A stretch of 64,000 nucleotides of DNA, from the IMG/VR virus record IMGVR_UViG_3300003877_000001, positions 1 to 64,000 of that record; one strand, written 5' to 3'. This document shows positions 33,873 to 63,318 of the stretch, piece after piece. The stretch's first letter is position 1; every line of letters starts with the position of its first letter. The position numbers and the translations under genes were made by a program. The notes under the pieces were generated by a model, which had not been told where the DNA came from, made no database searches, and was given only the letters and a program-made list of their open reading frames with translations.

Positions 33873-33938
33873 GTCTTTTTAATAAAAAATGAAAATAAAT
33901 ATTTATGTAACCTTTTTTATTTATATACGTATATTCTA

Positions 33939-34310
33939 TTGTCACAAGTTTGACAAATATACAAAAAATATTGAATATGAGGAAGTTAATTAAAAAAATT
34001 AACCCAAATGAATATCTAAAATTATCAACATATGCTAAAAAATATAGTATAGTTAAAAGAAAGATATATCGTTATGTTGATGATGATTTAGTAGATAATG
34101 TTAAAATAGATGGAATCCCATTTATTAAAGATATTCATTTTCCTATCCTAGAACGTGATAATCGTGAATCTATTGTCCCAAGTTTGTCAATAGATACTTC
34201 TATTGTCCCAACTGTGACATTAAAAAGTGGTGAAAGTACTGATAATCAAGTAGATAATCCTATTGTCCCAACTGTGACATTAGATAAGTATATTGTCCCA
34301 AGTGTGACAA
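33939..34310. repeat. Array of five palindromic TTGTCM-N6-TGWCAW sites
   Basis: Copies at 33939, 34173, 34203, 34263 and 34293; a sixth at 38244. Confidence 0.85.
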
Positions 34311-34417
34311 TAGAAGAAAATGAAAAAATAGAATTAAATAATCTTTTAAATAAGCCTGAAAGTGATACAACTATTAGTGATTATAAAAGAATTGAAGAAT
34401 TAAAAAATAAATATTAA
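33977..34417 (+). CDS. Putative HTH DNA-binding protein
   Basis: YLKLSTYAKKYSIVKRKIYRYV (excisionase/MerR-like); start revised to the ATG at 33977; IVP(S/T)(L/V) repeats encoded by the DNA palindromes. Confidence 0.55.
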   Translation: MRKLIKKINPNEYLKLSTYAKKYSIVKRKIYRYVDDDLVDNVKIDGIPFIKDIHFPILERDNRESIVPSLSIDTSIVPTVTLKSGESTDNQVDNPIVPTVTLDKYIVPSVTIEENEKIELNNLLNKPESDTTISDYKRIEELKNKY

Positions 34418-34420
34418 ATA

Positions 34421-36928
34421 TTAAACACTACCACCTTGTACATGTACCAATTGTGCAGGTACTTTCTTAGCAATATTTGTGTAGAATGAACTATCACCAA
34501 CATTAACATCAATATTAGCCACAAGTGCTACTTCTTGTTCACTGAATTGAACTTTAAGCGGTTTAGATAACATATTAACTAATTGACCAATTCCACTATT
34601 ACTACTTACATCTGTTGATGCAATAGATTGTATTGTATTTTTAACATCTGCAAGCTGTCCTACCGATCCACTCATAACAGCTCCAATACTTGTAAATGCA
34701 TCACCTACAATTTTCATACCATTAGAACTTGAAGCTATTGCCATTACTGAAGCTGCCATACCAGCAACACCTAACATTGTAATAGGGTTTGCAAATAATA
34801 AAGTTGCAGCACCAATAGCTGCTAAATCACCACCAATTCCAGATAAATCTGCACCACTTAACATTGCTAAACCTTCTCCCATATATCCAATACCAGCAGC
34901 AGCAATACCAATACCTGCTCCAATACCTAATACAGCTAATGTCAGAATTCCTATACCAATTGCTGATACTTCTGCTGCTTTACCGAATATTAACATACCA
35001 GCAGCCATAAGTGGAACAGCAATAGCTAATCCTAGTGCAACTCTTTCGAAACTTTCTAATTGTTCTACACTTAATTTAGACATGGAATCTGCTAAAGCAG
35101 CAACACCTTTAGCTGCAATCATTATACCAGTACCCATACCAACAGCAGCAACACCAACACCAGCACCTTTACCTAAAGCAGCCATTCCACCACCTCTTGC
35201 AGCACCACTAGCACCTTTAGCAAGACCACCAACACCTTTAGTTGCAGTACGTGCAATACCTTTACCAGCACCACCAATCAGACCACCAATACTTGGTAAT
35301 ATACCTTTTAATATTCTGATCATTGGAGATGCCATCATTAAAACAGCACCAATTGCACCAGCACCTGAAAGTATATCTTTATTTGTTTTAGATAAATCAC
35401 CAAACCATTCCGATATATTTGTAACAATAGGTCTTATAAATTCTAATACTGAATTAATACCATTAAGCATAGGAAGTAATGTTGATTTTAATTCCATTAT
35501 AGTATTTTTCATTGCATCATCAAATGTTTGAGAATCTAATGCACGTTGTTTTAAACTAGCACTTTGTTCTTTTAAACCACTTAATTGATCAGAACCAATA
35601 TTTGATACATCAGTAGCAATACCACCTATTTCAACAAACATTCTACCTGTAGTTTTATCAAATTTAGCAAGACCCTCAATAATATCTTTTTCGTCTTTAG
35701 TAAATCCTTTAGAATTCATTTGTGAACGAGTTTGTTGAATTTCTCTCATTCTAAATGCTTGTTTAGTAAGTTCTTCAGTAGTCATACCAAGTGCTTTAGC
35801 TGCTTGTGAAAGCTGATCTTTAGCCATAGGAGAAGCTAATGCAAAATCAAATCCATCAGCAGTCTTATTCAACGTAACCATACCTTGTGTCATTTCGTTA
35901 ATACGTTTCATATATGCTTCAGGATCATTTCTAGATTCAAAAAGCATAGACATAGGATCTGCTAAACTAGCAAATTTACCACCAAGTACTTGTAATTGTG
36001 CACTCATTTCAATTACTGAATCTAATCTTCTACCCTTTTCCATAGGTTCAAAAACAGAATTCATATCTATTTTAAATTTTTCAGCATAAATAGCCATATC
36101 AGCCATAGATTTTACACCATTTCTAAATGAATATTTTTGAAGTTTTTTGAAGTTCGAATTAACAGCTTTTAATACTTTACCAGTATTAACACCCATTCTT
36201 TCAGTAGTATCAACAATTCTTTGTACTTCACCAGCAGTATCAGTAGCATTGAAACCCATCATTTCATATTGACCAGCCATACGAGCAGCACCTTCAATAC
36301 CTAAAGAAGTACCTTTAGCTATTAAAGTCATTGATTCTAAATTTTCTTGATTAAATTGTCTAACTCTACCTGTTTCATCAGCATATGTACTAACCATTTG
36401 AGTAAGACCTTTCATATCAATACCCATACGAGCAGCAAACATGGAAGAATCTTCTAAATTATTTCGCATCATTGCTGAACGATCACCAGATAATCCCATT
36501 TCAAGATTAAGATTTTTAATACTTGCATCAGCATCCATTAAAAATGTTTTCATAATACCAGCATTTTTACTAATTGCAGTGCCTAATGAACTAACTGTTT
36601 TAAGGAGTAATTTTTGTGTATCTAATGTTTTTTCTGATTTTGATAATATTTTATCTTGAGCATCGGATTGATTTTTATATTTTTTTAGTAAATATTTACT
36701 AATTTTATCTTGATTAGATAGATGTTTAGTTATGGTTTCATCAATATTAGCTTGTTTATTTCTTTTTTGATTAATAATTTCTTCCTCTACTGCTTGTTTT
36801 CTTCTTAGGTTATAGATATTATCTAATTTTGATAATTCCCTTTCAAGTAAACGAATATTTTCATTAGCAATAGCATTAGCTGCTTCTGTTTCTTCTTTTA
36901 ATTGTTTAGCCGATATTTTTTTTGCCAT
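34421..36928 (-). CDS. Tail tape measure protein
   Basis: 835 aa, helical, with an A/G-rich hydrophobic C-terminal half; downstream of the chaperone frameshift pair. Confidence 0.8.
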   Translation of the reverse strand: MAKKISAKQLKEETEAANAIANENIRLLERELSKLDNIYNLRRKQAVEEEIINQKRNKQANIDETITKHLSNQDKISKYLLKKYKNQSDAQDKILSKSEKTLDTQKLLLKTVSSLGTAISKNAGIMKTFLMDADASIKNLNLEMGLSGDRSAMMRNNLEDSSMFAARMGIDMKGLTQMVSTYADETGRVRQFNQENLESMTLIAKGTSLGIEGAARMAGQYEMMGFNATDTAGEVQRIVDTTERMGVNTGKVLKAVNSNFKKLQKYSFRNGVKSMADMAIYAEKFKIDMNSVFEPMEKGRRLDSVIEMSAQLQVLGGKFASLADPMSMLFESRNDPEAYMKRINEMTQGMVTLNKTADGFDFALASPMAKDQLSQAAKALGMTTEELTKQAFRMREIQQTRSQMNSKGFTKDEKDIIEGLAKFDKTTGRMFVEIGGIATDVSNIGSDQLSGLKEQSASLKQRALDSQTFDDAMKNTIMELKSTLLPMLNGINSVLEFIRPIVTNISEWFGDLSKTNKDILSGAGAIGAVLMMASPMIRILKGILPSIGGLIGGAGKGIARTATKGVGGLAKGASGAARGGGMAALGKGAGVGVAAVGMGTGIMIAAKGVAALADSMSKLSVEQLESFERVALGLAIAVPLMAAGMLIFGKAAEVSAIGIGILTLAVLGIGAGIGIAAAGIGYMGEGLAMLSGADLSGIGGDLAAIGAATLLFANPITMLGVAGMAASVMAIASSSNGMKIVGDAFTSIGAVMSGSVGQLADVKNTIQSIASTDVSSNSGIGQLVNMLSKPLKVQFSEQEVALVANIDVNVGDSSFYTNIAKKVPAQLVHVQGGSV

Positions 36929-37172: not shown

Positions 37173-38144
37173 CTAGTGACTTGGGAAAAAAAAATCAATA
37201 CCCATACTTAACGGTGCTTCGAATTTATAACCGTCTGGTGCTGTAAACATATATTTCATTTCAACTTCAGGAGATACATCTAATAATTTTCTTCTTATAG
37301 TAAATGCATCTAAGGCTGGCATAACATCAACAAAACGTTCAATATATGATCTATCTCTATTACCATTAATTTCCATAATAGATGCTTTTAATCTCATAGT
37401 ATTAAATTCTGATACTTCTTCTTGATATGCTTCTCTACGTGCTTCTGCTTGTTTAAATATAATATCTTCAGCACCTGAAGTTAAAAGTTTTACACTAACT
37501 TTTTTCTTTCTCATAGGTATTTCAACTACAAACTCACCAGCAGCATTAGGTTTTTCATTAACTTCTTTATATTTTAATGTTAATAAATCCACATCTTCTT
37601 CAAAACTATTTCCGTTTCTAGGATCAGGAACAGAAACCTTATATATATTACCATATGATGATGTTCTTAAAAATAAAATAAGTGCACTTCTATCACCACT
37701 TAATAAATTTTTAGGATTAATATTTTTATCTACAATTTTTCTAGCTAATAACTTATCTAATACCGAACCATCATCAATGAATGATGGTGTGGTTAAAAGG
37801 TCTTCATCTCTTGAAGTAAGATATTCAATTTGAACTTCTTTTAATCCATCTGGATAAAATAAACCTTTTGATGGTAATGAAACAACTTCATATGACATCA
37901 ATAAATCAGGATCATTTTCAGTTTGAATTTGATTTTGTAAATTATCTGCATTATAATTTAATGTTTGTGCAGGTATATTAATTGGTTCAGGTATTTGTGG
38001 TGTTGGTATAACTGATGGATCATCTACTGTTGGTATAGAATTATCTTTTGGTGGTTCAATTCCTTTTGATTTATAATATTCTTCCATAGCGTTTTTCATT
38101 GCTATTCCTTCTAATTCTTTTTCTGTTTTTTTTTCTGTTGCCAT
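37173..38144 (-). CDS. Tail/baseplate assembly chaperone (T4 gp26-like)
   Basis: VSLPSKGLFY, LTSRDEDLL, LLSGDRSALILFLR; ends GIDFFF. Confidence 0.7.
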   Translation of the reverse strand: MATEKKTEKELEGIAMKNAMEEYYKSKGIEPPKDNSIPTVDDPSVIPTPQIPEPINIPAQTLNYNADNLQNQIQTENDPDLLMSYEVVSLPSKGLFYPDGLKEVQIEYLTSRDEDLLTTPSFIDDGSVLDKLLARKIVDKNINPKNLLSGDRSALILFLRTSSYGNIYKVSVPDPRNGNSFEEDVDLLTLKYKEVNEKPNAAGEFVVEIPMRKKKVSVKLLTSGAEDIIFKQAEARREAYQEEVSEFNTMRLKASIMEINGNRDRSYIERFVDVMPALDAFTIRRKLLDVSPEVEMKYMFTAPDGYKFEAPLSMGIDFFFPSH

Positions 38145-49013: not shown

Positions 49014-49502
49014 TTAGTAATTTAAAATACATCTCCAAGGTTGGATTGTTACAGTAATTTTCTGTAATTCATCCGAACTATGATCATTTGTACCAAAGTC
49101 AACATCTACAATTTGTGCTTGCTCTATAAACCATTTTTCAACTTCTACACCTGTTGGATCAAGTGCCTTTAAGTTAATATTTTTCTTATATCCAGCTGCG
49201 TAACCCATACGACCAGTAAGTGATTCTGCGTGTAGTCTTACCCATTCCATTAATTGATTTGAGGTCGAAGGACCTATCGTATCAATAAATGTTATATCTA
49301 ATGTTCCCCACTTATATTTACCAGCAACGTAATTGAATTCATTAAGGTATGGTATTTCCACAGAATTTATATTTAATGTTGGTCTTTTGAAAGTTTGTAC
49401 TTTCCATACTTCTATTCCTAATTCGCTTGAAAACTCCGCAAAGAATCTATTTTCTCTTTTAGGTTCAAAATCAAACGGAATTCCTCTTAACATTTCTGCC
49501 AT
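49014..49502 (-). CDS. Tail tube protein (T4 gp19-like)
   Basis: EPKRENRF, YVAGKYKW, LMEWVR, LDPTGVEVEKW. Confidence 0.85.
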   Translation of the reverse strand: MAEMLRGIPFDFEPKRENRFFAEFSSELGIEVWKVQTFKRPTLNINSVEIPYLNEFNYVAGKYKWGTLDITFIDTIGPSTSNQLMEWVRLHAESLTGRMGYAAGYKKNINLKALDPTGVEVEKWFIEQAQIVDVDFGTNDHSSDELQKITVTIQPWRCILNY

Positions 49503-49569: not shown

Positions 49570-51291
49570 ATGATTATTGAAAAATTTAAACAATATTTTA
49601 CAACTAATAATAAATCTGGATATAAAACTAGAGAAAAACACGTAGAAAAAAAATTTTCTAAATTATATAATAATATTGAAAATTATCAATTAAATCATTC
49701 TAAGATGTTATTTAATCAAAAATTATATAATTATTTATATAACATAAAAAAAATCCCAAAATGTCTAACATGTGGTAGTGAAATTAAATGGAGAGGTGTT
49801 TTTACCGAAGGATATAGAAAATATTGTAATTTACAATGTGGGGGGAAGGGTGAAAAAAGATTAAATAATATTAAAAATACTGTAAAAGAAAAATATGGTG
49901 TTGAGTATATTAGTCAATCTGATGAAATTAAGAATAAAATTAAAAGTAATAATCTAAAAAAATATGGTGTTGAACACTGTTTTCAATCTGATGAAATTAA
50001 GAATAAAATAGAAAAAACAAACCTAGAAAGATATAAAACAAAACACCCAATACAATCTGATGAAATTAAGAATAGAATTAAAAGTAATAATTTAAAAAGA
50101 TATGGTGTTGATAATCCAAGTAAATTAAAATCTGTTAAAGAAAAACTAAGACATACTAATTTAAAAAAATATGGTGTTGATAGTGTGATGAAGGTTGAAA
50201 GTATTAAAAATAAATTATTAGATAGTAAACTAAATAAATTCGTATTAAAAAATAAATTAAATTTTGGTGTTGATAATATTGTTAATAAAAGTAGTAGTCA
50301 ATACTTAATAAAAAATCAATGTACTGAACATGATGAATATTTAATTGATAAGTCATTATTTTATCATAGAGTAAAATATGGAGTAAGAAACACATGTACA
50401 ATATGTAATCCTATCTCTGAACAATCATCAATAAAAGAAAAGGAAATTAAAGATTGGTTAATATCAGATTTAAAACTTAATATCATTGAAAATGATAGAA
50501 AAATTCTTAATGGTAAAGAAATTGATATATTTCTTCCAAATTTTAATTTAGCAATTGAATTTAATGGATTATATTGGCATTCAGATTTATTTAAAGATAA
50601 AAATTATCACTTAAATAAAACAGAATTAGCAAATGCAAAGGGAATTCAACTACTACATATCTTTGAGGATGAATGGGTTTATAAATCTGATATTGTTAAA
50701 TCCATAATTAAAGCTAAATTAGGATTAATTGAAAATAAAATATTTGGTAGAAAATGTATTATTAAAGAAATAACTTCTAAAGAATCAAAAGAATTTCTTA
50801 ATAAAAATCACATACAAGGTAATGTTAATGCAAGCATTAGATTAGGTTTGTTTTATAATGAAAAATTAGTTAGTTTAATGACCTTTGGAAAATTAAGAAA
50901 AATGATGGGTGGTAAGTCTAAAGAAGGTGAATATGAAATGTATAGGTTTTGTAATAAATTAAATACAAGTATAATAGGTGGAGCAAGTAAATTATTTAAA
51001 TATTTTTTAAATAATTATAAACCAAAACAAATAATTTCATATGCCGATAGGAGATATTTTGATGGTAATTTATATGAGAAATTAAAATTTAATTTTATTC
51101 ATTCAACAAAACCAAATTTTTGGTATTTTAAACAAAATAGTTTAAATAGAGAATATAGATTTAAATATAATAAAAATATTTTAATAAAAAAAGGATATAA
51201 TAAAACTAAAACAGCAAATGAAATTATGTCTGAAATTGGTTATTTATGGATTTATGATTGTGGAAATCTAAAATTTAATTATTCATCTTAG
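49570..51291 (+). CDS. Hef-like (very-short-patch-repair/DUF559-type) endonuclease with KYGV repeats
   Basis: Many KKYGV(E/D) repeats; [19 protein letters not shown]; LLHIFEDEW; YADR; IYDCG. Confidence 0.75.
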   Translation: MIIEKFKQYFTTNNKSGYKTREKHVEKKFSKLYNNIENYQLNHSKMLFNQKLYNYLYNIKKIPKCLTCGSEIKWRGVFTEGYRKYCNLQCGGKGEKRLNNIKNTVKEKYGVEYISQSDEIKNKIKSNNLKKYGVEHCFQSDEIKNKIEKTNLERYKTKHPIQSDEIKNRIKSNNLKRYGVDNPSKLKSVKEKLRHTNLKKYGVDSVMKVESIKNKLLDSKLNKFVLKNKLNFGVDNIVNKSSSQYLIKNQCTEHDEYLIDKSLFYHRVKYGVRNTCTICNPISEQSSIKEKEIKDWLISDLKLNIIENDRKILNGKEIDIFLPNFNLAIEFNGLYWHSDLFKDKNYHLNKTELANAKGIQLLHIFEDEWVYKSDIVKSIIKAKLGLIENKIFGRKCIIKEITSKESKEFLNKNHIQGNVNASIRLGLFYNEKLVSLMTFGKLRKMMGGKSKEGEYEMYRFCNKLNTSIIGGASKLFKYFLNNYKPKQIISYADRRYFDGNLYEKLKFNFIHSTKPNFWYFKQNSLNREYRFKYNKNILIKKGYNKTKTANEIMSEIGYLWIYDCGNLKFNYSS

Positions 51292-51765: not shown

Positions 51766-54519
51766 TTATAAATCATCAAACGATGCACCTTCAGGAGTAA
51801 TAGTGAACGTAATACCGATGAATTCAAGAGACTTGGTAGGCTTCAAGAATATTTCACCAAATAATTCGTTTCTATCTCTACTTTCAGGAGAGTTATTTGA
51901 ATCATCCATCTTAATTCTAAATTCAGTAAGACCTCTTTCTCTTCTAATAGAATCCAATACTGGATTAGCTTTAGATAAGAATTCATCTACTGTTGCTTGA
52001 TCATTTTGTTCAAATAATAACTTACTTGCTATGTTAGCAATAAGAACTTTAATTTGAAGTAATAATCTTCTTACATTAATTCTATCAAGTGCACTTTCTT
52101 TAAATTGAAGAGTCTTTTGACCAAATATTGCAGTTCCAACATCTGAAAAATCAGCCATTGGATTAATTCTACCAGCATAAAGTGTATCTCTAGAATCTTG
52201 AGACATTCTATATTTTGATCTTCTTGCATCAGTCACACCTCTTTGTAAACCAGCAGGTGCATACCAAGGGAATTTAACATTATCAGTAAATGCCATTGCT
52301 TTAAGTACCTCACCAGTAGGTGGTAACCAAATGTTAACGTTATTTTGTGTATCTGGAATTTGAATCCAAGGGAAATATGTACAAGCATAACTTGTATCAA
52401 TTGCAGTATTTTCTAGTAAATCAACAATCTCTGTTGCTGCAAGATTATCTGCTCTTTCACCTACTTCGATAGCAATATCAATATCAGGAGAATCAATAAT
52501 ATATAATGTATCAGTTCTTTGTGTTTCCATTATTTCAATAGTATCTTGAACAATTACAGTATTATCACCAAAATTAATTCCCGGTGTTGCAAATATGTTA
52601 ATTGTAACTTCTTCAGGGTTTGCAAATGTTAATATTGCAGTTTCCCATGCTTGGAAATCATTATGTGGTGTAACACCATCTTCAACACCATCAAATATTC
52701 CACCTTTTCTATAATTATCACCAAAAGTTCTTGATCCACGATGTTCATCCCAACCATCAAAACCACCAGCAGGAACTAATGTAAATTTACGTGAATTTAC
52801 TTCACCATAAACATCACCATCTTGAATATCACCTGAAGTTCTAAATCTACCAGCACCAACTTCAAATTCTCCTATTAATGTATTACCATCATAGAAAATA
52901 CCTGTAGCACCAGAATCCATATGGAAACCTTTAGATTTAGCAGGAGTACCTTTACCTCTGTAATTAAAATGATTTTGATCTATACCTATTGTATTAATAA
53001 AATTATCTGCTGAATAAGCAGTTTCAGAAATACCTAATGATACTCTATTTAATCTTTCGTCTGGTAAATAAAATGTTTTATAAAGTATTGATGGTGCAAT
53101 ACCTTCGGCAGAAGCTGTTGTAGCAGAAGCTGCCCAATCATTTTGAATATAACCCTCAAAACCAGCAGGGAAAGCATCTGGTTCAGCATTTTCATTAATC
53201 TCTAACATAATATATTCACTTTGAAGAACATATTCACCATTAGCAGTACCAATTCTATTACCAATAAAATTAGTTTCACCTTTTCTCATTACACAACGTG
53301 AAAACGATTCTAATACAATAGGATTTGCATCTGTATCATTAAAGTCACGAACTATAATATTAAATTCTTTTGAAATTGGATCAATATTAGTTATTGATAT
53401 TTTAATTTCTTTATTTGCATTATCACCATCAGATATTGATATGAATTTAAATAATTGATCAACATCATTACCTTTTAATTGTGATACAACCCAAGGGGTT
53501 TCAGGTGTTTGAAATTGCTCTTGATAATCTGTAAATATTGATGCATCTGCATCAATCATTATTGTATTTAAACCATAACCACTACCATTAGCATCTAATA
53601 ATCTTGTTAAATCTGGATAAACTCTTTCACACCAAATTTTACCATTTTTACCTTTAGGTTCGCTACCAATTACACTTGGTAAGAATTCTGCTGAATTAGG
53701 ATCTAATGATACTACAAAAGTTTCTGTTGATGGATCAGTATCAAATGCATCAGGTGCTTTGAATGCACTTAATTCAAAATTCCCAAACATATTACCAATA
53801 CCTGTATTAGTTTCATTTGCAATCATTGTTAATGTGTCAGTATCAAATCTTGTTGTAGGTACTGCATCATCATTATCCGTTACACTACCTCTTGAACGAA
53901 CTACTGCAAGTACCATATTTTCTAATTCAGTTTGAGATGTTGCACTAAAAGTTACCAATGTATCATCAACAGTACCACTTAATGAAGTTCCTGTATATGA
54001 TGTTACTACAAAATCATGTCTTACACCAGTAAAAGCTGAACCAGATTTAGTAAATCCAGTAAAAGTTGAACCAGTTTGTCCAATAGCATTTAAACCTACA
54101 CCTAAATAGCTTCCATTACTGAAAGGTACACTAACAGGTGCTGCGGTAGATACTTCTCCTATTGTTGCTTCATCAACACCTGCACTTAATGTAATTGCCC
54201 ATGCAGTACCTGCATCATATCCCGATAAACCAAGTACTCTTGTTACCCATGCTTGGTTTGATTCATTTAGATATGCATTAACTGCATAGGGTAATTGATA
54301 TCTTAATTCTAAATTCCCACTTGGAAATTTTTCAGTGTTTTGTTCACCAAAACGAGTTCTAAATTGTCCTTTGTCCTGTACGAATACTGGTTCAAAAGCA
54401 GGTCCTTTAACAGTTTCACCTACGATTCCCAATGTTGTTACACCAACATTTCTAGTAACGAAAGATAAGTCTCTTTCACGAAATTTATAACCGGGTGAGG
54501 TAAATACAAATTCAGCCAT
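51766..54519 (-). CDS. Tail sheath protein (T4 gp18-like)
   Basis: FTSPG....ERD, GETVKGPAFEP, PWYAPAG..RG, FGQKTL, LDRINVRRLL. Confidence 0.93.
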   Translation of the reverse strand: MAEFVFTSPGYKFRERDLSFVTRNVGVTTLGIVGETVKGPAFEPVFVQDKGQFRTRFGEQNTEKFPSGNLELRYQLPYAVNAYLNESNQAWVTRVLGLSGYDAGTAWAITLSAGVDEATIGEVSTAAPVSVPFSNGSYLGVGLNAIGQTGSTFTGFTKSGSAFTGVRHDFVVTSYTGTSLSGTVDDTLVTFSATSQTELENMVLAVVRSRGSVTDNDDAVPTTRFDTDTLTMIANETNTGIGNMFGNFELSAFKAPDAFDTDPSTETFVVSLDPNSAEFLPSVIGSEPKGKNGKIWCERVYPDLTRLLDANGSGYGLNTIMIDADASIFTDYQEQFQTPETPWVVSQLKGNDVDQLFKFISISDGDNANKEIKISITNIDPISKEFNIIVRDFNDTDANPIVLESFSRCVMRKGETNFIGNRIGTANGEYVLQSEYIMLEINENAEPDAFPAGFEGYIQNDWAASATTASAEGIAPSILYKTFYLPDERLNRVSLGISETAYSADNFINTIGIDQNHFNYRGKGTPAKSKGFHMDSGATGIFYDGNTLIGEFEVGAGRFRTSGDIQDGDVYGEVNSRKFTLVPAGGFDGWDEHRGSRTFGDNYRKGGIFDGVEDGVTPHNDFQAWETAILTFANPEEVTINIFATPGINFGDNTVIVQDTIEIMETQRTDTLYIIDSPDIDIAIEVGERADNLAATEIVDLLENTAIDTSYACTYFPWIQIPDTQNNVNIWLPPTGEVLKAMAFTDNVKFPWYAPAGLQRGVTDARRSKYRMSQDSRDTLYAGRINPMADFSDVGTAIFGQKTLQFKESALDRINVRRLLLQIKVLIANIASKLLFEQNDQATVDEFLSKANPVLDSIRRERGLTEFRIKMDDSNNSPESRDRNELFGEIFLKPTKSLEFIGITFTITPEGASFDDL

Positions 54520-54666: not shown

Positions 54667-56757
54667 ATGAACAAATCATATAGAATAAAAACCGACATAG
54701 GTACAAATGCAGATAAGTCCATTAAATTGAAACTTGAACAAGATGTAGATACTTTTGAAATTTTATCATTAAAAATAGATCAAAAGGATATTTATGAAGC
54801 ATTTAATTGTGATTATGGTATTATTGTTGGTAGAGTTAATGCTAATGGTTCTGTTGGAATACCTAATGCTAAGATTTCAATATTTATACCTATTAGTGAA
54901 GATGATAAACAAAATGCAGAAATAAGGGCGATATATCCATATGAAAATCCACGTGATAAAAATACAACAGGTAAAAGATATAATTTATTACCACGTGTAG
55001 CGCAAATACAAACAGATGGTACTGTAAGACCAAAACAACCATTTGGGACATTTCCAACAAAAGAAGAAGTGGTAACAAATGATAGTTGGTTAGAAGTATA
55101 TGATAAATACTATAAGTTTAGTACTGTAACTAATGAATCTGGTGATTATATGTTGTTTGGAGTTCCAGTAGGTACACAAACAGTTCATATGTCAGTCGAC
55201 ATTACGGACATTGGACAATTTTCAATGACACCTGCTACAATGGTAACTAATCTAGGTTATTCACCTAATTTATTTACTGACAATGGAACTAAAATTAAAC
55301 CAAGTACTGATTTAGATGATTTACCAAATATTGAAACACAAGAAATTAGTGTGGATGTTATACCTTTTTGTGGTGATAATGAAATATTTGATATTGGCAT
55401 AACAAGACAAGATTTTAGAATACGTGCAGAATTAGTTTCAACATTTACTATGTTTGGTAGTGGATTTACTAATGGTGATGATGAAATGTGGATTGCCGAA
55501 GAAGGTGGTAGTAATAAGACAGTTAGAGAACTTTATAGAGAACATAATTTAGAAAAATTTATGGCAACTAATAGAGCAGCAGAAGTAACTGAACAAATAT
55601 TTTATTATCCTGCAAATGTTAGTGATGCAGATATTGCAAATTCTACACTTGATCCATTAGAAGAAAGAATGATTAAATTAAGTGATACTCAATATGCAAA
55701 ATTTATTAATGAAGGTGATTTTGTTTATATTATTCCATGTAATAGAAATAAAGTAGTTACAAATGAAGAAGGTGAACTAGTTCCAGTTGATGATGATAAC
55801 CCATCAGGAGTGTTTACAGAATTTAAAGGATTTTTAACATTAGAAATTAGTTCAGAAACACTACCAATGGGATTTAGTGGTGAACTAACATCTGGTAATA
55901 ATCGAGCAGTTAGACCTTTAAGATATAAATATAAATTTCCACAATCATCAACAACACTTGGTAATACTCTTAGTTCAACAGATGATGAACCAATAATTAA
56001 TGCTTGGAGAAAACAACATCATACATTTAATTTGAATAAAATATATAGTGTTGCAAGATTTCATGGTACAACATTTAATTCGAGCAGTAGTTCACAAAAT
56101 AGTGCATTAAATCAAGTTAATGGTTTTGTTAATAATGGTACTGCTTGGGATTTAAATAATATAATGACTTCAACAGAAAGTCATTGGAATGTTGGTATTT
56201 TATGGGTTCAAGATACTGCTGATATATTAAGTAGTACTAAAGAATTTCCATCAAACAAATCTGATGGTACTCAATTTGGTGGTAATTGGATGAATTTTAC
56301 TATATATTTTGTTCAAAATGGTAGATTTCAAGGTGATGTTTCAGCATATCAAGATATGAAATCAAATCCAAATTTTCAACATGCTAGTAATCATGGTTAT
56401 CATTTTATTGATTCTAACAACCAACCAATTGCGGCAAATGTTTTAAATACACAATGGTTTCCTAGAATTGATTTACACTTTACAGATATAATTGAAGTAC
56501 CGAAGGAAGATATATTATTATTTAACAACATATCATCAAAAGGATTTAAAAAATCAACATTACTAGATCCTCTGATTGGTAGTGATTATAAAAATGGTTT
56601 GAGTCTCGTTCCTATTGCAGGTAGTAGTGATAAAACAATGGGTAGTGGTAAAATAGATGGTAGTACAACAGGTACACAAGACACTGATATATATTTCTAT
56701 AAAGGATTAAATGGATCAAATTGTACACAATTTTTAGCAGACTTAGGATTGGTATAA
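54667..56757 (+). CDS. Putative virion structural protein
   Basis: 696 aa; GRVNANGSVGIPNAKISIF and TNESGDYMLFGVPVG (prealbumin-like fold motif). Confidence 0.6.
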   Translation: MNKSYRIKTDIGTNADKSIKLKLEQDVDTFEILSLKIDQKDIYEAFNCDYGIIVGRVNANGSVGIPNAKISIFIPISEDDKQNAEIRAIYPYENPRDKNTTGKRYNLLPRVAQIQTDGTVRPKQPFGTFPTKEEVVTNDSWLEVYDKYYKFSTVTNESGDYMLFGVPVGTQTVHMSVDITDIGQFSMTPATMVTNLGYSPNLFTDNGTKIKPSTDLDDLPNIETQEISVDVIPFCGDNEIFDIGITRQDFRIRAELVSTFTMFGSGFTNGDDEMWIAEEGGSNKTVRELYREHNLEKFMATNRAAEVTEQIFYYPANVSDADIANSTLDPLEERMIKLSDTQYAKFINEGDFVYIIPCNRNKVVTNEEGELVPVDDDNPSGVFTEFKGFLTLEISSETLPMGFSGELTSGNNRAVRPLRYKYKFPQSSTTLGNTLSSTDDEPIINAWRKQHHTFNLNKIYSVARFHGTTFNSSSSSQNSALNQVNGFVNNGTAWDLNNIMTSTESHWNVGILWVQDTADILSSTKEFPSNKSDGTQFGGNWMNFTIYFVQNGRFQGDVSAYQDMKSNPNFQHASNHGYHFIDSNNQPIAANVLNTQWFPRIDLHFTDIIEVPKEDILLFNNISSKGFKKSTLLDPLIGSDYKNGLSLVPIAGSSDKTMGSGKIDGSTTGTQDTDIYFYKGLNGSNCTQFLADLGLV

Positions 56758-56788
56758 AAAAACCCATCGAATTCGATGGGTTTTTTTT
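56756..56788. terminator. Bidirectional terminator
   Basis: A7-CCCATCGAATTCGATGGG-T8. Confidence 0.85.
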
Positions 56789-56789
56789 A

Positions 56790-57269
56790 TTATTTCACAA
56801 CGTGATAGTAAATACCAATTGTGACATTATTAATGGTTATACTATCATGAATTAATCTAATAGTCGCTGTTTTTTGAGTTAAATCATATTCAGTAATTTG
56901 CCATTGAATATTATCAGTACTATTTTGAATAGTGTATTTTATTATTAATGTTTCAGGATCAAATGTAACAACCCAATTTCTTTCAAAATTATTTCGACAT
57001 ACATCAGTAAATATAATTAAATTATCTGCTGATTTAATGTTGAAATCTGTTAATTGCCAAGTAAGATGACTTAAATTACCACAAACAGAATTTCTATCAT
57101 AGGTTTCATTTTGATATGTAACAGACTCACTCAACCAAACACCATCAAAATCTGCTAATGTAATACCATTACTAGGATTATCTGGTGTAACTTCATTTGG
57201 GTCGCATGACATAACACCTAGTGCTAGTACTACTGCGAAAATCGACATTAAATTTTTCATTTTTTTCAT
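56790..57269 (-). CDS. Lipoprotein 1 (lipocalin-like)
   Basis: Signal peptide II with lipobox LGVMS-C; FDGVWL motif. Confidence 0.8.
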   Translation of the reverse strand: MKKMKNLMSIFAVVLALGVMSCDPNEVTPDNPSNGITLADFDGVWLSESVTYQNETYDRNSVCGNLSHLTWQLTDFNIKSADNLIIFTDVCRNNFERNWVVTFDPETLIIKYTIQNSTDNIQWQITEYDLTQKTATIRLIHDSITINNVTIGIYYHVVK

Positions 57270-57373
57270 AATTTTTAATAGTTTTATTTTGTTATACGGA
57301 AAAATTCTTATAAAGGTTACAAATTTTTAATATTTTTTTTTATAATTGTAACCTTTTTATTGATAATGGGTAT

Positions 57374-57405
57374 AAAAAAACCCATAGTATATACTATGGG
57401 TTTTT
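57374..57405. terminator. Bidirectional terminator
   Basis: A7-CCCATAGTATATACTATGGG-T5. Confidence 0.85.
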
Positions 57406-57421
57406 AATTAAATTTCATCTA

Positions 57422-57835
57422 CTATATATTAAGATTATCACTATATGTAGCAACTAATCCACTATCTGTTAATGACGTAACATTTAGATTATAAACAGTC
57501 CCATAATATTTTATCAGAATATTTTTACCCCTTAAATCCCAAGTTGCTAGTTGTGGATTATGACTACCAGTGTATTTTGGATTTACGGCAAATGCAGTTC
57601 CATCTGCATTAAGAATAAAAACAAAATGTTTCCAAGATTGATCAAAATCATTACCAGTATCGAATGGTGGGTTTATTGGTGATGTTTCATCAGTACAACA
57701 CATTGAACTTGTCTGTGTGTAAGTTTCAATATATTCCTCTAATGAATTATCAGGTGTAATAGAATTTTCATTTGGGTCGCATGACATAACACCTAGTGCT
57801 AGTACTACTGCGAAAATCGACATTAAATTTTTCAT
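57422..57835 (-). CDS. Lipoprotein 2
   Basis: Same signal peptide and lipobox, different mature domain. Confidence 0.8.
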   Translation of the reverse strand: MKNLMSIFAVVLALGVMSCDPNENSITPDNSLEEYIETYTQTSSMCCTDETSPINPPFDTGNDFDQSWKHFVFILNADGTAFAVNPKYTGSHNPQLATWDLRGKNILIKYYGTVYNLNVTSLTDSGLVATYSDNLNI

Positions 57836-57912
57836 TTTTTTTATTTTTATATTTTATATTAACATATACGTAATAAAATAAATAAAGGTTACATTTTTTT
57901 ATAATCGTATTT

Positions 57913-59103
57913 ATGATTAGAATGGATATAAAGGAAAAAATACAATTAGGAGAGGATAGTTATATTGATAGTGTAAATGTGAATACAACAATTAAATTTC
58001 CATTACAATCAAATAATGACCTTAATTTTGAATATGATATACAAAACGTATTAGATGTTACTCAAGTATTTGATACAGAAAGACAAGAATCTAAAAAATA
58101 TAGGCTTCATGGCGAATTTGAATACCTTTCAATATTAAATGGATTACCTAAAGATTATACATTGTTAAGTGATTTTTTTAGTTTAATACCATTATCTGCT
58201 GATACAAAAAATATATATAGCGATTTAAATATATATTTAGTTAAACCATCAATAGAATTTACTGAATTAATTACAAATGAAAGATATATAAAAAACTATG
58301 AAATTATTGCAAACATAAATAATGTAGAAATATTTAATTCTGGATTTGCAAAAAATATTTATAGTGAACAACAATATACATATGTTATTAATTTAGATAT
58401 TGATATTGCTGATCAATACGATGGATTAAACTTTCCAATTACAGAATTAGCATTATATATTGAATACCAACCACAACAAAACGGTAATGGTGTTTTAGAA
58501 ACAATGGAGAGAAAAAATTATAATTCTACTGGTGGAACAATCACACAAAATTTTACACCAATATCTTTAAATGTTGGTGATATAATTGTTGGGGATGTAA
58601 TTAATTACAATAAATTACAATATGAACAAACTGATTTTATATATAATAATGAACCACAAACAATGGAACATTATATTAATACAACATATAAGGATACACC
58701 AACATCAGGAAATAAAATTTTAAAATATAAATATAAACCATTTATACCAATTACATTAAAATTTCTTGAATCTAATATAACAAGAGGAAACACTGGTAGT
58801 ACATCCTATGAAGTGACTAGTACAATACCACCATTTGCAACTCAAATTGATAATGATGGTAATTTTATATGGAGAAAATTATTACCTAATGGATTTTTTG
58901 ATCCAATTGAAGAAATAGGTGTTAATTTTCCTTTTATAAATCAAAGACATTATGTATTTTCAAATATAATATTTAAAATGCAACCAGATTTAAGTGATTT
59001 TAATACATCAAACGTATTTAATCAAATATTATTTGATCAAAATAATTTAATCAATGCTGAACCTAATAGTTCATTAGATAATATAGGAGAAATATGCAAT
59101 TAA
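57913..59103 (+). CDS. Putative virion structural protein
   Basis: 396 aa; FDTERQES..YR, WRKLLPNGF..G..FPF.N..HY; CGTATTTAT motif at the start. Confidence 0.55.
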   Translation: MIRMDIKEKIQLGEDSYIDSVNVNTTIKFPLQSNNDLNFEYDIQNVLDVTQVFDTERQESKKYRLHGEFEYLSILNGLPKDYTLLSDFFSLIPLSADTKNIYSDLNIYLVKPSIEFTELITNERYIKNYEIIANINNVEIFNSGFAKNIYSEQQYTYVINLDIDIADQYDGLNFPITELALYIEYQPQQNGNGVLETMERKNYNSTGGTITQNFTPISLNVGDIIVGDVINYNKLQYEQTDFIYNNEPQTMEHYINTTYKDTPTSGNKILKYKYKPFIPITLKFLESNITRGNTGSTSYEVTSTIPPFATQIDNDGNFIWRKLLPNGFFDPIEEIGVNFPFINQRHYVFSNIIFKMQPDLSDFNTSNVFNQILFDQNNLINAEPNSSLDNIGEICN

Positions 59104-61421: not shown

Positions 61422-61556
61422 ATGAAAGAAAAGAAAATAACAATCAGAATCGATGAAAATTTAAGAAAAAAATATAGAGAATTTTGTAATAAAAATGGAT
61501 ATTCATTATCTAAAAGATTAAGATTAATAATAAAAAGAGATATGAATGAAGAATAA
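61422..61556 (+). CDS. Ribbon-helix-helix (CopG/Arc-like) protein, 44 aa
   Basis: [34 protein letters not shown]; start revised to the ATG at 61422; TATATTTG at 61394. Confidence 0.75.
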
Positions 61557-63318
61557 ATATAAAATACATCAAATATTAAGTTACGTTTTTTTATTAAGAA
61601 AAAATGAAATTAAATTCATAAATATGATAAATGAATTTAATGTGAATTTTCCTAATTCAATAAGATGGTCAAATAAAATATTTAATTATTATAATAATAT
61701 CATCACCCAAGTAAAATGTAAAGAATGTAATAGTAAAAATGTTAAATATTTATCATACAATAGAGGATATGGTAAATATTGTTCCACTAAATGTAGTGCT
61801 TGTTCTAACGAAACAAAAGAAATGAAAATAATAACGTCCATCAAAAATTATGGTACTACACATCGTTTAAAAAACAAAAAAGAATATCAAAAACAAATAA
61901 AAAATAATTTAAATAAATATGGTGTAGAAAATATATCACAAAATGAAGAAACTAAAAAAAAGAGAAAAAACACCTTTTTAAAAAAATATGGGGTGGAACA
62001 TCCTCTTCAATCTAAAAAAATAAAAGAAAAACAAAGAAATACGATTTATAATAAATACGGAGTAAAAAATCTATCCAATTCAAAAATAATCCAAGAAAAG
62101 AAAAAAGAAACTTCATTAAAAAAATATGGTGTTGAACACCCCTTCCAAAATAAAGAAATAAAAGAAAAAATAAGAGAAACAAATTTAAAAAAATATGGTG
62201 TTGAATATTATGTTTCTTCAGAAAAAAATAAAATCTATTTAAAAGAAAAATTAGAATTAAATAAAAAATTAATATGGAAAAATAAACTAAACATTAGTGA
62301 AAAAGATATAATAACACTAAAAGATAATTCTTTTCAAATTAAAAACAATTGTAATAATCATTTAGATGGATTTGAAATTAATAAATATAATTTATATAAT
62401 AGAATAAAATATGGTGTAAAAAATATTTGTACGATCTGTAACCCAATTTCCGAACAATCATCAATTAAAGAAAATGAAATTAAGGATTGGTTGAAAAACG
62501 ATTTAAAATTAAATATTATTGAAAATGATAGAGAAATCCTTAATGGTAAAGAATTAGATATTTATCTTCCTGATTTTAACTTAGCAATTGAATTTAATGG
62601 TCTTTATTATCATTCAGATAAGTTTTTACCTAATAATTATCATTTAGATAAAACTGAATTATGTGAAGAAAAGGGAATACAGTTACTTCATATCTTCGAA
62701 GACGAATGGATATATAAATCTGACATTGTTAAAAGTATAATTAAGGCTAAATTAGGATTAATAGGAAATAAAATATTTGGTAGGAAAACGGAATTAAAAG
62801 AAATAACTTCTAAAGAAAGTAGAGAATTTCTTAATAATAATCATATACAAGGTAATGTAAATTCAAGCATTAGAATTGGTTTATTTCATGAAAATGAATT
62901 AGTTAGTTTAATGACTTTTGGTAAAAAAAGGGTTATAATGAAATCTAAATCAAAAGAAGGTGAATATGAAATGTATAGATTTTGTAATAAACTAAATACT
63001 TCAGTCATTGGTGGTGCAAGTAAATTATTTAAATATTTTATTAATAATTATAAACCAGAAGAAGTAATATCATATGCAGATAGAAGATATTTTGATGGTA
63101 AAATGTACAAAAAATTGGGTTTTAATTTAGAAACTATTACCAAACCTAATTTTTGGTATGTTAAGGGGTTAAATAGATTTTATAGGTTTAACTTTAGAAA
63201 AGATAAATTAGTTTCAGAGGGCTATAACCCCAATAAAACAGCAGAAGAAATAATGATTCAAAGGAACTATTTTAAAATATATGATTCTGGAAATTTAAAA
63301 TATAGTCTTTATTTTTAA
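61546..63318 (+). CDS. Hef-like endonuclease with KYGV repeats (paralogue of 49570..51291)
   Basis: [19 protein letters not shown]; LLHIFEDEW; near-identical C-terminal half. Confidence 0.75.

Follow-up and report, generated by a model that had tools for sequence, protein, structure and literature searches.

Lipoproteins with which phages remodel the host envelope are, to our knowledge, described from only a few coliphages, and we know of almost nothing comparable for Bacteroidota-type hosts or jumbo phages. Here we describe a tandem pair of predicted lipoprotein genes, cassettes A and B, in the tail-gene region of the phage genome IMGVR_UViG_3300003877_000001. The analysed stretch, called the window in the following, comprises the first 64 kb (64,000 nucleotides, nt) of this 325,854-bp IMG/VR virus record, which is rated complete. 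Llp of phage T5 is a small phage lipoprotein whose gene adjoins the receptor-binding gene pb5, and it blocks FhuA from the periplasmic side (PMC9586334). As with Llp and with Cor of T1/phi80-like phages, we deal here with small lipoproteins of a virulent phage that are encoded by accessory genes in the tail region, would be made by the infected cell and would act at the outer membrane. In contrast to these systems, the genes form a tandem of two, have their leader in common and encode lipocalin-like barrels, and searches of Pfam, PHROG, PADLOC and NCBIfam revealed no sequence or family similarity to Llp or Cor. Moreover, llp lies beside a receptor-binding gene, whereas the cassettes adjoin a candidate for one, the gene of a protein of 696 amino acids (aa). 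Envelope-altering lipoproteins as phage accessory genes are interesting, not unprecedented.

Three other groups of systems resemble parts of this locus. The lipoproteins of the Bacteroidota family PF13648, such as BACUNI_01346 (4qrl), potempin E (8ehc) and BtaiB (9jdd), share the N-terminal lipobox, the short tether and the small 8-stranded barrel; staphostatin-like Bfi proteins of Bacteroides fragilis are inhibitor-type lipocalin-like relatives grouped with this class. The proteins described here differ in being phage-encoded, in having a phage-specific promoter and in scoring below the Pfam threshold (17 vs 22.4 bits, reached by relatives only). Morons are autonomous promoter-gene-terminator units between late genes of lambdoid phages. 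The cassettes are likewise self-contained units antisense to tail genes, with a content that varies between relatives, but they sit at a conserved site that is always occupied in the relatives found, and they use the phage's own promoter class instead of a host-type lysogenic one. Finally, the Vpma, Vsp and Vlp families of Mycoplasma and the lipoprotein families of Borrelia combine a conserved 5' region or leader with divergent mature parts. Switching and rearrangements of the Vpma genes in Mycoplasma have been described (PMC5634654). The conserved upstream and leader sequence on divergent mature parts and the recombination within the family are common to both cases; the phage locus differs in having two copies, with no recombinase gene or linking inverted repeats, and in varying between phage genomes and not within a clone. 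Each cassette has its own promoter, so that nothing needs to be switched, unlike in Vpma-type systems, where a recombinase switches many silent copies at a single expression site.

Anatomy of the tandem cassettes

The two cassettes encode lipocalin-like phage lipoproteins of a family not described before. Its members have a promoter-leader module in common and occur naturally in a single and in a stacked state. An earlier reading of the window, made from the sequence only, had portrayed them as modular units inserted antisense between structural genes, each with its own TGTAAC-N17-CGTATA promoter, a base-identical 75-bp leader, a dissimilar mature domain and a CCCAT-stem terminator. The features of the locus are as follows:

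56756..56787, both strands: bidirectional intrinsic terminator that ends cassette A (minus) and the 696-aa gene (plus); perfect 16+16 palindrome
56790..57269, minus strand: lipoprotein A, 159 aa, open reading frame (ORF) identified together with a lipobox scan (the ATG at 57260 gives 156 aa)
57192..57269, minus strand: leader repeat copy 1, a 5' untranslated region (UTR) of 6-9 nt and 23 codons through C-DPNE
57293..57321, minus strand: promoter of cassette A, match to the motif TGTAAC-N17-CGTATA
57270..57375, no strand assigned: inter-cassette junction, decayed copy of the whole proximal intergenic region
57376..57405, both strands: bidirectional intrinsic terminator of cassette B; perfect 15+15 palindrome
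57422..57835, minus strand: lipoprotein B, 137 aa, ORF
57767..57844, minus strand: leader repeat copy 2, direct repeat of copy 1
57865..57893, minus strand: promoter of cassette B, match to the motif TGTAAC-N17-CGTATA
54667..56757, plus strand: 696-aa protein, ORF adjoining the tail sheath gene
57913..59103, plus strand: 396-aa protein, ORF divergent from cassette B

Both promoter motifs, the leader and the palindromes were recovered as claimed, and each unit is indeed a self-contained promoter-leader-payload-terminator cassette with a leader that evolves separately from its payload. The antisense orientation was confirmed as well, the 696-aa and 396-aa ORFs both lying on the plus strand; calling these neighbours structural is plausible but unproven, given that neither has a family match.

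The leader copies at 57192-57269 and 57767-57844 agree at 77 of 78 nt and contain an exact run of 75 nt, of which 69 are coding and 6 lie upstream. Exactly two copies of the 69-nt coding leader are present in the window, a number reached in none of 100 shuffles, and the whole 325,854-bp genome also holds exactly two. In a hydrothermal-vent sequencing run, the repeat forms a 75-nt unitig with a depth of 47.3 compared to 19-21 in the flanking sequence. An assembly break at the repeat, suspected because locus L004 seemed to end just past it, was ruled out, as the contig continues in later loci.

The upstream ATG of A corresponds to the start position in the relatives, and the same codon in B is now ATA. 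The 5' UTR of each cassette is short, A-rich and devoid of a Shine-Dalgarno sequence. Folding of the leader mRNA revealed nothing unusual (z about 0), and all Rfam matches of the leader region were below the gathering score and located on the terminators. These terminators are CCCAT-stem palindromes with A and T runs on either side. The one at 56756-56787 folds at -18.6 kcal/mol on the minus and -19.5 kcal/mol on the plus strand (z about -5.5 to -5.7), the one at 57376-57405 at -15.9 and -16.4 kcal/mol on the two strands (z about -4.5 to -4.6). Folding at -16 to -19 kcal/mol on either strand indicates that both are bidirectional.

Relatives of the cassettes and history of the site

To find relatives, we used word-index searches with A, B and the leader region alone, together with DNA-pattern scans for the leader through IMG/VR, the metagenomes of JGI and 185,579 species genomes. 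Eight further clusters of protein relatives, a stub and a fragment were found, the relatives being short metagenomic contigs; relatives of A are P0002-P0004 and P0029. The gene order in the related phages is sheath, a homologue of the 696-aa gene and one cassette, followed in most contigs by a homologue of the 396-aa gene. The site is occupied in every relative found: a single A-type cassette is present in L007, L010 and L034, and a single B-type cassette in L008, L013-L020, L011 and L033. Among the loci found, the A+B tandem exists only in the genome analysed here.

A scan of related genomes for the leader, with a count of payload types, had been proposed as a check of the idea that this is a recombination-fed display system. 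The related genomes do carry the leader; among all public relatives found it precedes A-type or B-type payloads only, and no third type turned up, the DNA scans not extending to ENA or Logan assemblies. With two leader copies in the genome and two payload types in the public data, the term display system was overstated. IMG/VR searches with the 396-aa protein and its alignment retrieved only a second record of the same phage, and scans of genome contigs with an alignment of the A family and with a degenerate leader pattern revealed no host homologues.

The junction between the cassettes retains traces of how the tandem arose. Its 105 nt align with the proximal intergenic region of all relatives, and alignment of the distal with the proximal upstream region as well as the repeats D2, D12 and I12 likewise mark it as a decayed copy. 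It preserves TATACC, complementary to the stop of the 696 gene, in fusion with CCAT, complementary to the start of the 396 gene. These remnants indicate that a whole intergenic unit was joined beside another one at a short TATAYCC microhomology. As this non-coding stretch can still be recognised, in contrast to the barrels, which are past pairwise detection, the joining is younger than the split between A and B, which means that two already different cassettes were brought together. According to our model, the whole intergenic unit of an A-carrier was joined head to tail to that of a B-carrier at the TATAYCC microhomology.

Three further copies lie outside the usual context. On L009 (1-1448, JGI 3300003876, the metagenome of the phage's second IMG/VR record), an A-type copy is found beside an XRE-like gene. 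It is the closest relative of A, with 75% aa identity in the barrel, has a diverged leader without the promoter motif and retains about 40 nt of the 3' end of the 696 gene. L021 contains a B-type gene (31-426) with the leader allele of the window and without a start codon, directly upstream of an IS1595-family transposase gene (474-1367). The third, L012 (1-114, VAPH01040760.1), is a stub in which the leader, with its -10 element, runs on for eight codons only before a stop; either a cassette has decayed in another genome, or the contig is chimeric. Together, the L009, L021 and L012 copies suggest that the unit moves by illegitimate recombination. Past the stub, L012 continues with unrelated DNA of higher GC content and small ORFs with signal peptides that are outer-membrane beta-barrel-like.

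A frozen leader on fast-evolving barrels

For comparisons between phages we used 63 nt of the leader, that is 17 codons ending at the Cys and the codons on through the E of DPNE. Over this stretch, A and B of the window are identical (63/63), and so are the A-type leader of L007 and the B-type leaders of L015 and L011 (63/63), while the two alleles differ from each other at 4 positions. Leader alleles therefore cluster by genome or lineage, and payloads cluster by type. This incongruent grouping requires that leader and barrel have been separated by recombination or gene conversion. In the same phage pairs, the flanking genes show a proportion of synonymous differences (pS) of 0.35-0.46; in the leader, about 5 synonymous changes would be expected in 14 synonymous sites and 0 were seen (P about 1e-3). 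A strict constraint at the nucleotide level is unlikely, because in L033 a barrel of the usual B type follows a leader that has diverged freely, and the leader mRNA has no unusual structure. Exchange of the promoter-leader segment is the better explanation for the identical leaders.

The barrels behave very differently. Crude pairwise Nei-Gojobori estimates gave dN/dS ratios (omega) of 0.32-0.91 for the barrels versus 0.13-0.25 for the 396-aa gene and the N-terminal half of the 696-aa gene at similar dS (0.6-0.9). Payloads evolve 3-6 times faster than their flanks, and payload identity is 36-56% at orthologous positions whose flanks are 73-77% identical. The exception is the comparison of A with the relocated copy on L009, which resulted in an omega of 0.06 at saturated dS and shows that the barrel of A is under constraint as a functional protein.

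A more far-reaching possibility, speculative and in our judgement unlikely, is that the promoter-leader-tether segment (about 150 nt) serves as a population-wide homology arm. Co-infecting jumbo phages would use it to swap or stack fast-evolving receptor-blocking barrels in one fixed position beside a variable tail-fibre gene, and the A+B tandem would be the first 'stacked' state. If so, the set of exclusion specificities would be shuffled independently of the rest of the genome.

Lipoprotein signals and barrel folds

Lipoprotein signals cleaved by signal peptidase II (SPII) begin with a basic n-region, followed by a hydrophobic core free of charges and by a lipobox whose final Cys lies within residues 15-35 (PROSITE PS51257-type rule). 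Both proteins show this layout: a hydrophobic core precedes the lipobox G-V-M-S-C with its Cys at position 22 in A and 19 in B, and the n-region has Lys at position 2 in B and at positions 2-3 and 5 in A. The Met at -2 is unusual yet permitted. A and B are consequently predicted SPII lipoproteins, which would be lipidated and cleaved by Lgt/LspA. A tether of about 12 aa (DPNE..TPDN), common to A and B, connects the leader to the barrel.

The sequence-only reading had deduced surface export from the acidic residues after the Cys. This deduction is weak. The mature N-terminus C-D-P-N-E has acidic residues at +2 and +5 only. The published export motifs of Bacteroidota, CS(D/E)2, K-(D/E)2 and Q-A-(D/E)2, have two consecutive acidic residues (PMC6222051), and C-D-P-N-E matches none of them. 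As the lipoprotein export signal has been defined only in part for the phylum, A and B may nevertheless be surface-exposed. Llp of T5, for its part, is oriented towards the periplasm (PMC9586334).

Neither A nor B had a match above threshold in Pfam, PHROGs, PADLOC or NCBIfam, and tblastn of both against 50,697 phage records gave no match. For A, an AlphaFold2 model was built from a four-sequence alignment, with a mean confidence (pLDDT) of 77 overall and about 90 in the barrel. Its top Foldseek matches in the PDB are all lipocalins (best E 8e-4). VIA-align, an independent all-against-all aligner, yielded Z scores of 9.7 to Treponema Tp0751, 8.4 to the lipocalin-like BACUNI_01346 of Bacteroides uniformis, 8.3 to BtaiB, an immunity protein of the type VI secretion system (T6SS) of B. 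fragilis, and 7.8 to Tannerella potempin E; according to the tool's own note, values in the range of 8-10 are often obtained with any small barrel. Template-modelling (TM) scores in the Atlas were 0.54-0.60. The best viral matches to A come from uncultured Caudoviricetes in BFVD and are uncharacterised entries annotated as lipocalin-like or 'Lipoprotein' (E 4e-3 to 1e-2, probability 0.99-1.0), but these are weak in terms of superposition (TM 0.4-0.5, high root-mean-square deviation). We know of no description of a shared-leader tandem for these entries. On the basis of the model, we are confident in predicting that A is a lipocalin-like beta-barrel.

The model of B is poor (pLDDT 48). B-type relatives P0006 and P0007 reach 17.4 and 17.0 bits on PF13648, Lipocalin_4 (E 0.009 and 0.011; gathering threshold 22.4), while A and B themselves do not hit this family even at E 10. 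Atlas searches with B by features and by structure both led to Lipocalin_4/Bacteroidota clusters, with TM scores of 0.56/0.61 to a Lipocalin_4-containing cluster, and a profile of the B barrel run against 1.8 billion representatives finds Lipocalin_4-bearing proteins (P0010 at E 8e-12). WD40/PD40 propeller matches of this profile (P0015, P0021) were weak and treated as false positives. The barrel comprises about 105 aa in B, and the range over A and B is 105-125 aa.

Past residue 30 or so, A and B of the window share no similarity by BLASTP or profile comparison, and the payloads of either type occupy the same site in relatives. The dissimilar or swapped mature domains of the sequence-only reading were nevertheless overstated, as the families cross-match in the barrel: P0002 of the A family aligns to P0006 of the B family with 34% identity over 61 aa (E 4e-5), and to the B-family protein of L021 at E 6e-5. 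A global identity of 31% between the payloads of A and B was discarded as an alignment artefact (shuffle z about 0.2). We conclude from these alignments that A and B are, in all likelihood, very divergent paralogues of one lipocalin-like lipoprotein family and not heterologous effectors.

The cassette promoters belong to a genome-wide class

The motif TGTAAC-N16-18-GTATA occurs 28 times in the genome versus 0.85 expected copies. Nearly all copies immediately precede an ORF, often 6 nt before the ATG, and the spacing of these many copies suggests leaderless or near-leaderless mRNAs. Genes behind this class include homologues of rIIA (E 2e-71) and rIIB (E 2e-34), of tRNA nucleotidyltransferase (CCA-adding enzyme) and of the tRNA-His guanylyltransferase Thg1; one copy is followed by a tRNA sequence. 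The class is concentrated at 108-236 kb of the genome. In the tail region, it is restricted to the two cassettes and one copy at 33906, and the motif is kept upstream of the cassette in related phages. In T4, transcription of rII and of the tRNA genes precedes that of late genes. By analogy with T4, the sharing of promoters with rIIA, rIIB and tRNA genes points to an early or middle regulon; the class is probably an early one.

The additional tail-region promoter (33906-33933, plus strand) drives a small antisense gene (33977..34417, 146 aa) that looks helix-turn-helix-like by eye and is wedged between a 1025-aa ORF and the tape-measure-like gene.

Neighbouring genes and genome context

The phage is a lytic-type myovirus of 326 kb. 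Around the cassettes, the block of tail genes comprises a tape-measure-like gene (34421..36928), a baseplate hub gene (37173..38144), a tail tube gene (49014..49502) and a tail sheath gene (51766..54519), the last of which matches PHROG 23 (E 4e-62). Cultured phages are only remotely related, with at most 33% identity in the sheath protein and to distant myoviruses only. Two ORFs of about 580 aa each (49570..51291 and 61546..63318, both plus strand) match homing/HNH endonuclease families (PHROG 3339, E about 1e-135). They interrupt the run of tail genes, and as they flank the block of sheath, 696-aa gene, cassettes and 396-aa gene, this part of the tail module seems to be a hotspot for selfish or accessory insertions.

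Neither the 696-aa nor the 396-aa protein has a family match in Pfam or PHROGs. The 396-aa protein is 75-77% identical in the relatives, with conserved gene order. In the 696-aa protein, the N-terminal half is 82-89% identical to the relatives and the C-terminal half 55-63%; omega is 0.13-0.21 for the former and 0.36-0.47 for the latter, which places the C-terminal half between the N-terminal half and the barrels. Owing to this conserved N-terminal and variable C-terminal half, the 696-aa protein is a candidate for a tail fibre or a receptor-binding protein. Replacement of entire segments of the 696 gene was seen in a related vent sample, with joints at 55485/55679, 56065/56239 and others.

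GC content of the window is 27.5%. Upstream of 255 long ORFs across the genome, a Shine-Dalgarno sequence was detected in 3% of cases compared to a background of 6.5%, hence there is no enrichment, and the start regions contain a pronounced A-rich tract at -14 to -10. The combination of a missing Shine-Dalgarno signal and an A-rich start region is the translation-initiation signature of Bacteroidota. A Bacteroidota-like host, as suggested before, is plausible in view of these start regions. All public runs that hold DNA of the phage come from one hydrothermal-vent metagenome study, and these runs may include the source sample, so they do not count as independent support.

Possible function and rival explanations

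The cassette products most likely alter the host cell envelope and would be made early in infection. In the mechanism we propose, the cassettes are transcribed with the early regulon as two independent single-gene units, and their products would be exported by Sec, lipidated by Lgt/LspA and sorted by Lol to the outer membrane of the Bacteroidota-like host. Each barrel would bind a component of the host envelope, most likely the phage receptor or an entry factor. As with Llp of T5, this binding would exclude superinfecting relatives and spare the progeny adsorption to debris. Two barrels would then mean two specificities, and recombination or gene conversion would keep the promoter-leader-tether segment near-identical while the barrels change fast. 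We favour exclusion or receptor masking because these are early-class accessory genes in a tail module next to a gene with a variable C-terminal half, because the payloads evolve at arms-race rates and because of the parallel to llp. Our confidence is high for the anatomy and the evolutionary history as described. Superinfection exclusion as the function is offered tentatively, as a possibility that we rather doubt than trust, and the complete account of anatomy, history and exclusion taken together falls a little short of evenly balanced.

Several observations weigh against exclusion. The proteins resemble neither Llp nor Cor nor any PADLOC or PHROG family, and family searches found no recognisable receptor-binding domain in the 696-aa protein. 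Across five full or partial loci, the payload type shows no visible co-variation with the C-terminus of the 696-aa protein, only two B-carriers being mutually close. There is no RNA run among the public runs that contain the phage, and the early timing is inferred from promoter sharing only. The fold of B is probably Lipocalin_4-like, as judged from several weak signals only. Moreover, the closest folds to A include protease inhibitors and a T6SS immunity protein, which fits inhibition of an enzyme equally well.

This last point leads to the main rival, in our view an unlikely one, in which A and B are inhibitor or immunity lipoproteins. Their barrels would neutralise a periplasmic or surface enzyme and thereby keep the cell intact until lysis. 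The enzyme could be a protease of the host or of a competitor, an effector of a T6SS or a bacteriocin effector, or, as with Sp of T4, incoming tails could be the target through their muralytic or depolymerase activity. The structural proximity of A to BtaiB (Z 8.3) and potempin E (Z 7.8) is in line with this, even if such Z scores are ordinary for any small barrel, and an arms race between enzyme and inhibitor would also suit the fast evolution of the payloads. In B. fragilis, genes of C10 proteases adjoin putative inhibitor genes of the staphostatin-like, lipocalin-like class, and some of these proteases are located on mobile elements including a prophage (PMC2873492). However, the genes next to the cassettes include none for a cognate protease or effector, and Pfam and NCBIfam searches revealed no sequence similarity to those families. 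Binding of a small hydrophobic molecule or cofactor, with the barrels aiding metabolism or membrane homeostasis as auxiliary metabolic genes, would agree with the lipocalin fold and with lipocalin-like proteins in other uncultured phages. We regard this as clearly improbable: an omega of 0.3-0.9 and a payload identity of 36-56% are unusual for a conserved ligand pocket, and two divergent copies expressed from one promoter class would add little for one ligand. Least credible of all, to the point of being nearly negligible, is a role in lysis as outer-membrane spanin subunit or unimolecular spanin. Phage-encoded candidates for outer-membrane lipoproteins invite this comparison, as does a faint N-terminal match to NCBIfam spanin2_2, but the latter reaches 12.8 bits at a cut-off of 100 bits and is confined to the signal peptide. 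Spanin genes lie in lysis cassettes and encode either a small Pro-rich outer-membrane lipoprotein that pairs with an i-spanin or a lipoprotein with a membrane segment at its C-terminus. A and B, by contrast, are globular barrels that lack such a segment, no i-spanin, holin or endolysin is encoded nearby, and the promoter class is common to rIIA, rIIB and tRNA genes rather than late genes.

With regard to history, the alternative is a tandem duplication in situ followed by divergence, with purifying selection and no cassette exchange behind the identical leaders. Remote homology of A and B, their tandem arrangement and the duplicated promoter and terminator would all be expected from such an event. 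We nevertheless think it quite improbable, since relatives carry a single cassette of either type at the same site and the non-coding junction is recognisable though the payloads are past pairwise detection. In addition, synonymous sites of the leader are unchanged while the flanks show a pS of about 0.4, leader alleles cluster by genome and not by payload type, and an A-type copy has been relocated in L009 together with about 40 nt of the 696-gene end. Joining of two already different cassettes, with subsequent exchange of the promoter-leader segment, is the history we prefer.

The locus is a compact case, with two small proteins, a defined promoter class, natural single and double variants and a frozen leader combined with a racing payload. 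If superinfection exclusion is true, it would show how recombination at a conserved leader allows phages to diversify their exclusion specificities. The lipocalin-like lipoproteins, which form a very large and uncharacterised class in Bacteroidota, would then gain a concrete role in phage-host conflict. If it is not true, the locus still illustrates mosaic evolution cleanly within 1.1 kb.

Additional members of the promoter class

A third promoter-like motif, TGTAAC-N16-GGTATAA, is present inside the junction (57347-57374, plus strand) and is aimed into the terminator at 57376-57405. It forms an inverted repeat with promoter A (57309-57322 / 57346-57359), and its '-10' is the remnant of the 696-gene stop. 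The motif may have arisen by chance when the junction formed; alternatively, it may drive an antisense RNA to B or a hairpin RNA of very short length.

Elsewhere in the genome (genome coordinates are given here), two further small ORFs have a lipobox-like motif, namely 220942..221211 (minus strand, 89 aa) and 216833..217093 (minus strand, 86 aa). The second of them follows a promoter of this class, and both are unrelated to A and B.

Six copies of the class carry a near-identical palindromic spacer (TTTAGGATATCCTAAA-like). They are located at 191399, 191956 and 193805 on the plus strand and at 211129, 214567 and 233104 on the minus strand of the genome. This spacer looks like an operator for a dimeric regulator of a subset of the regulon that includes rIIA.

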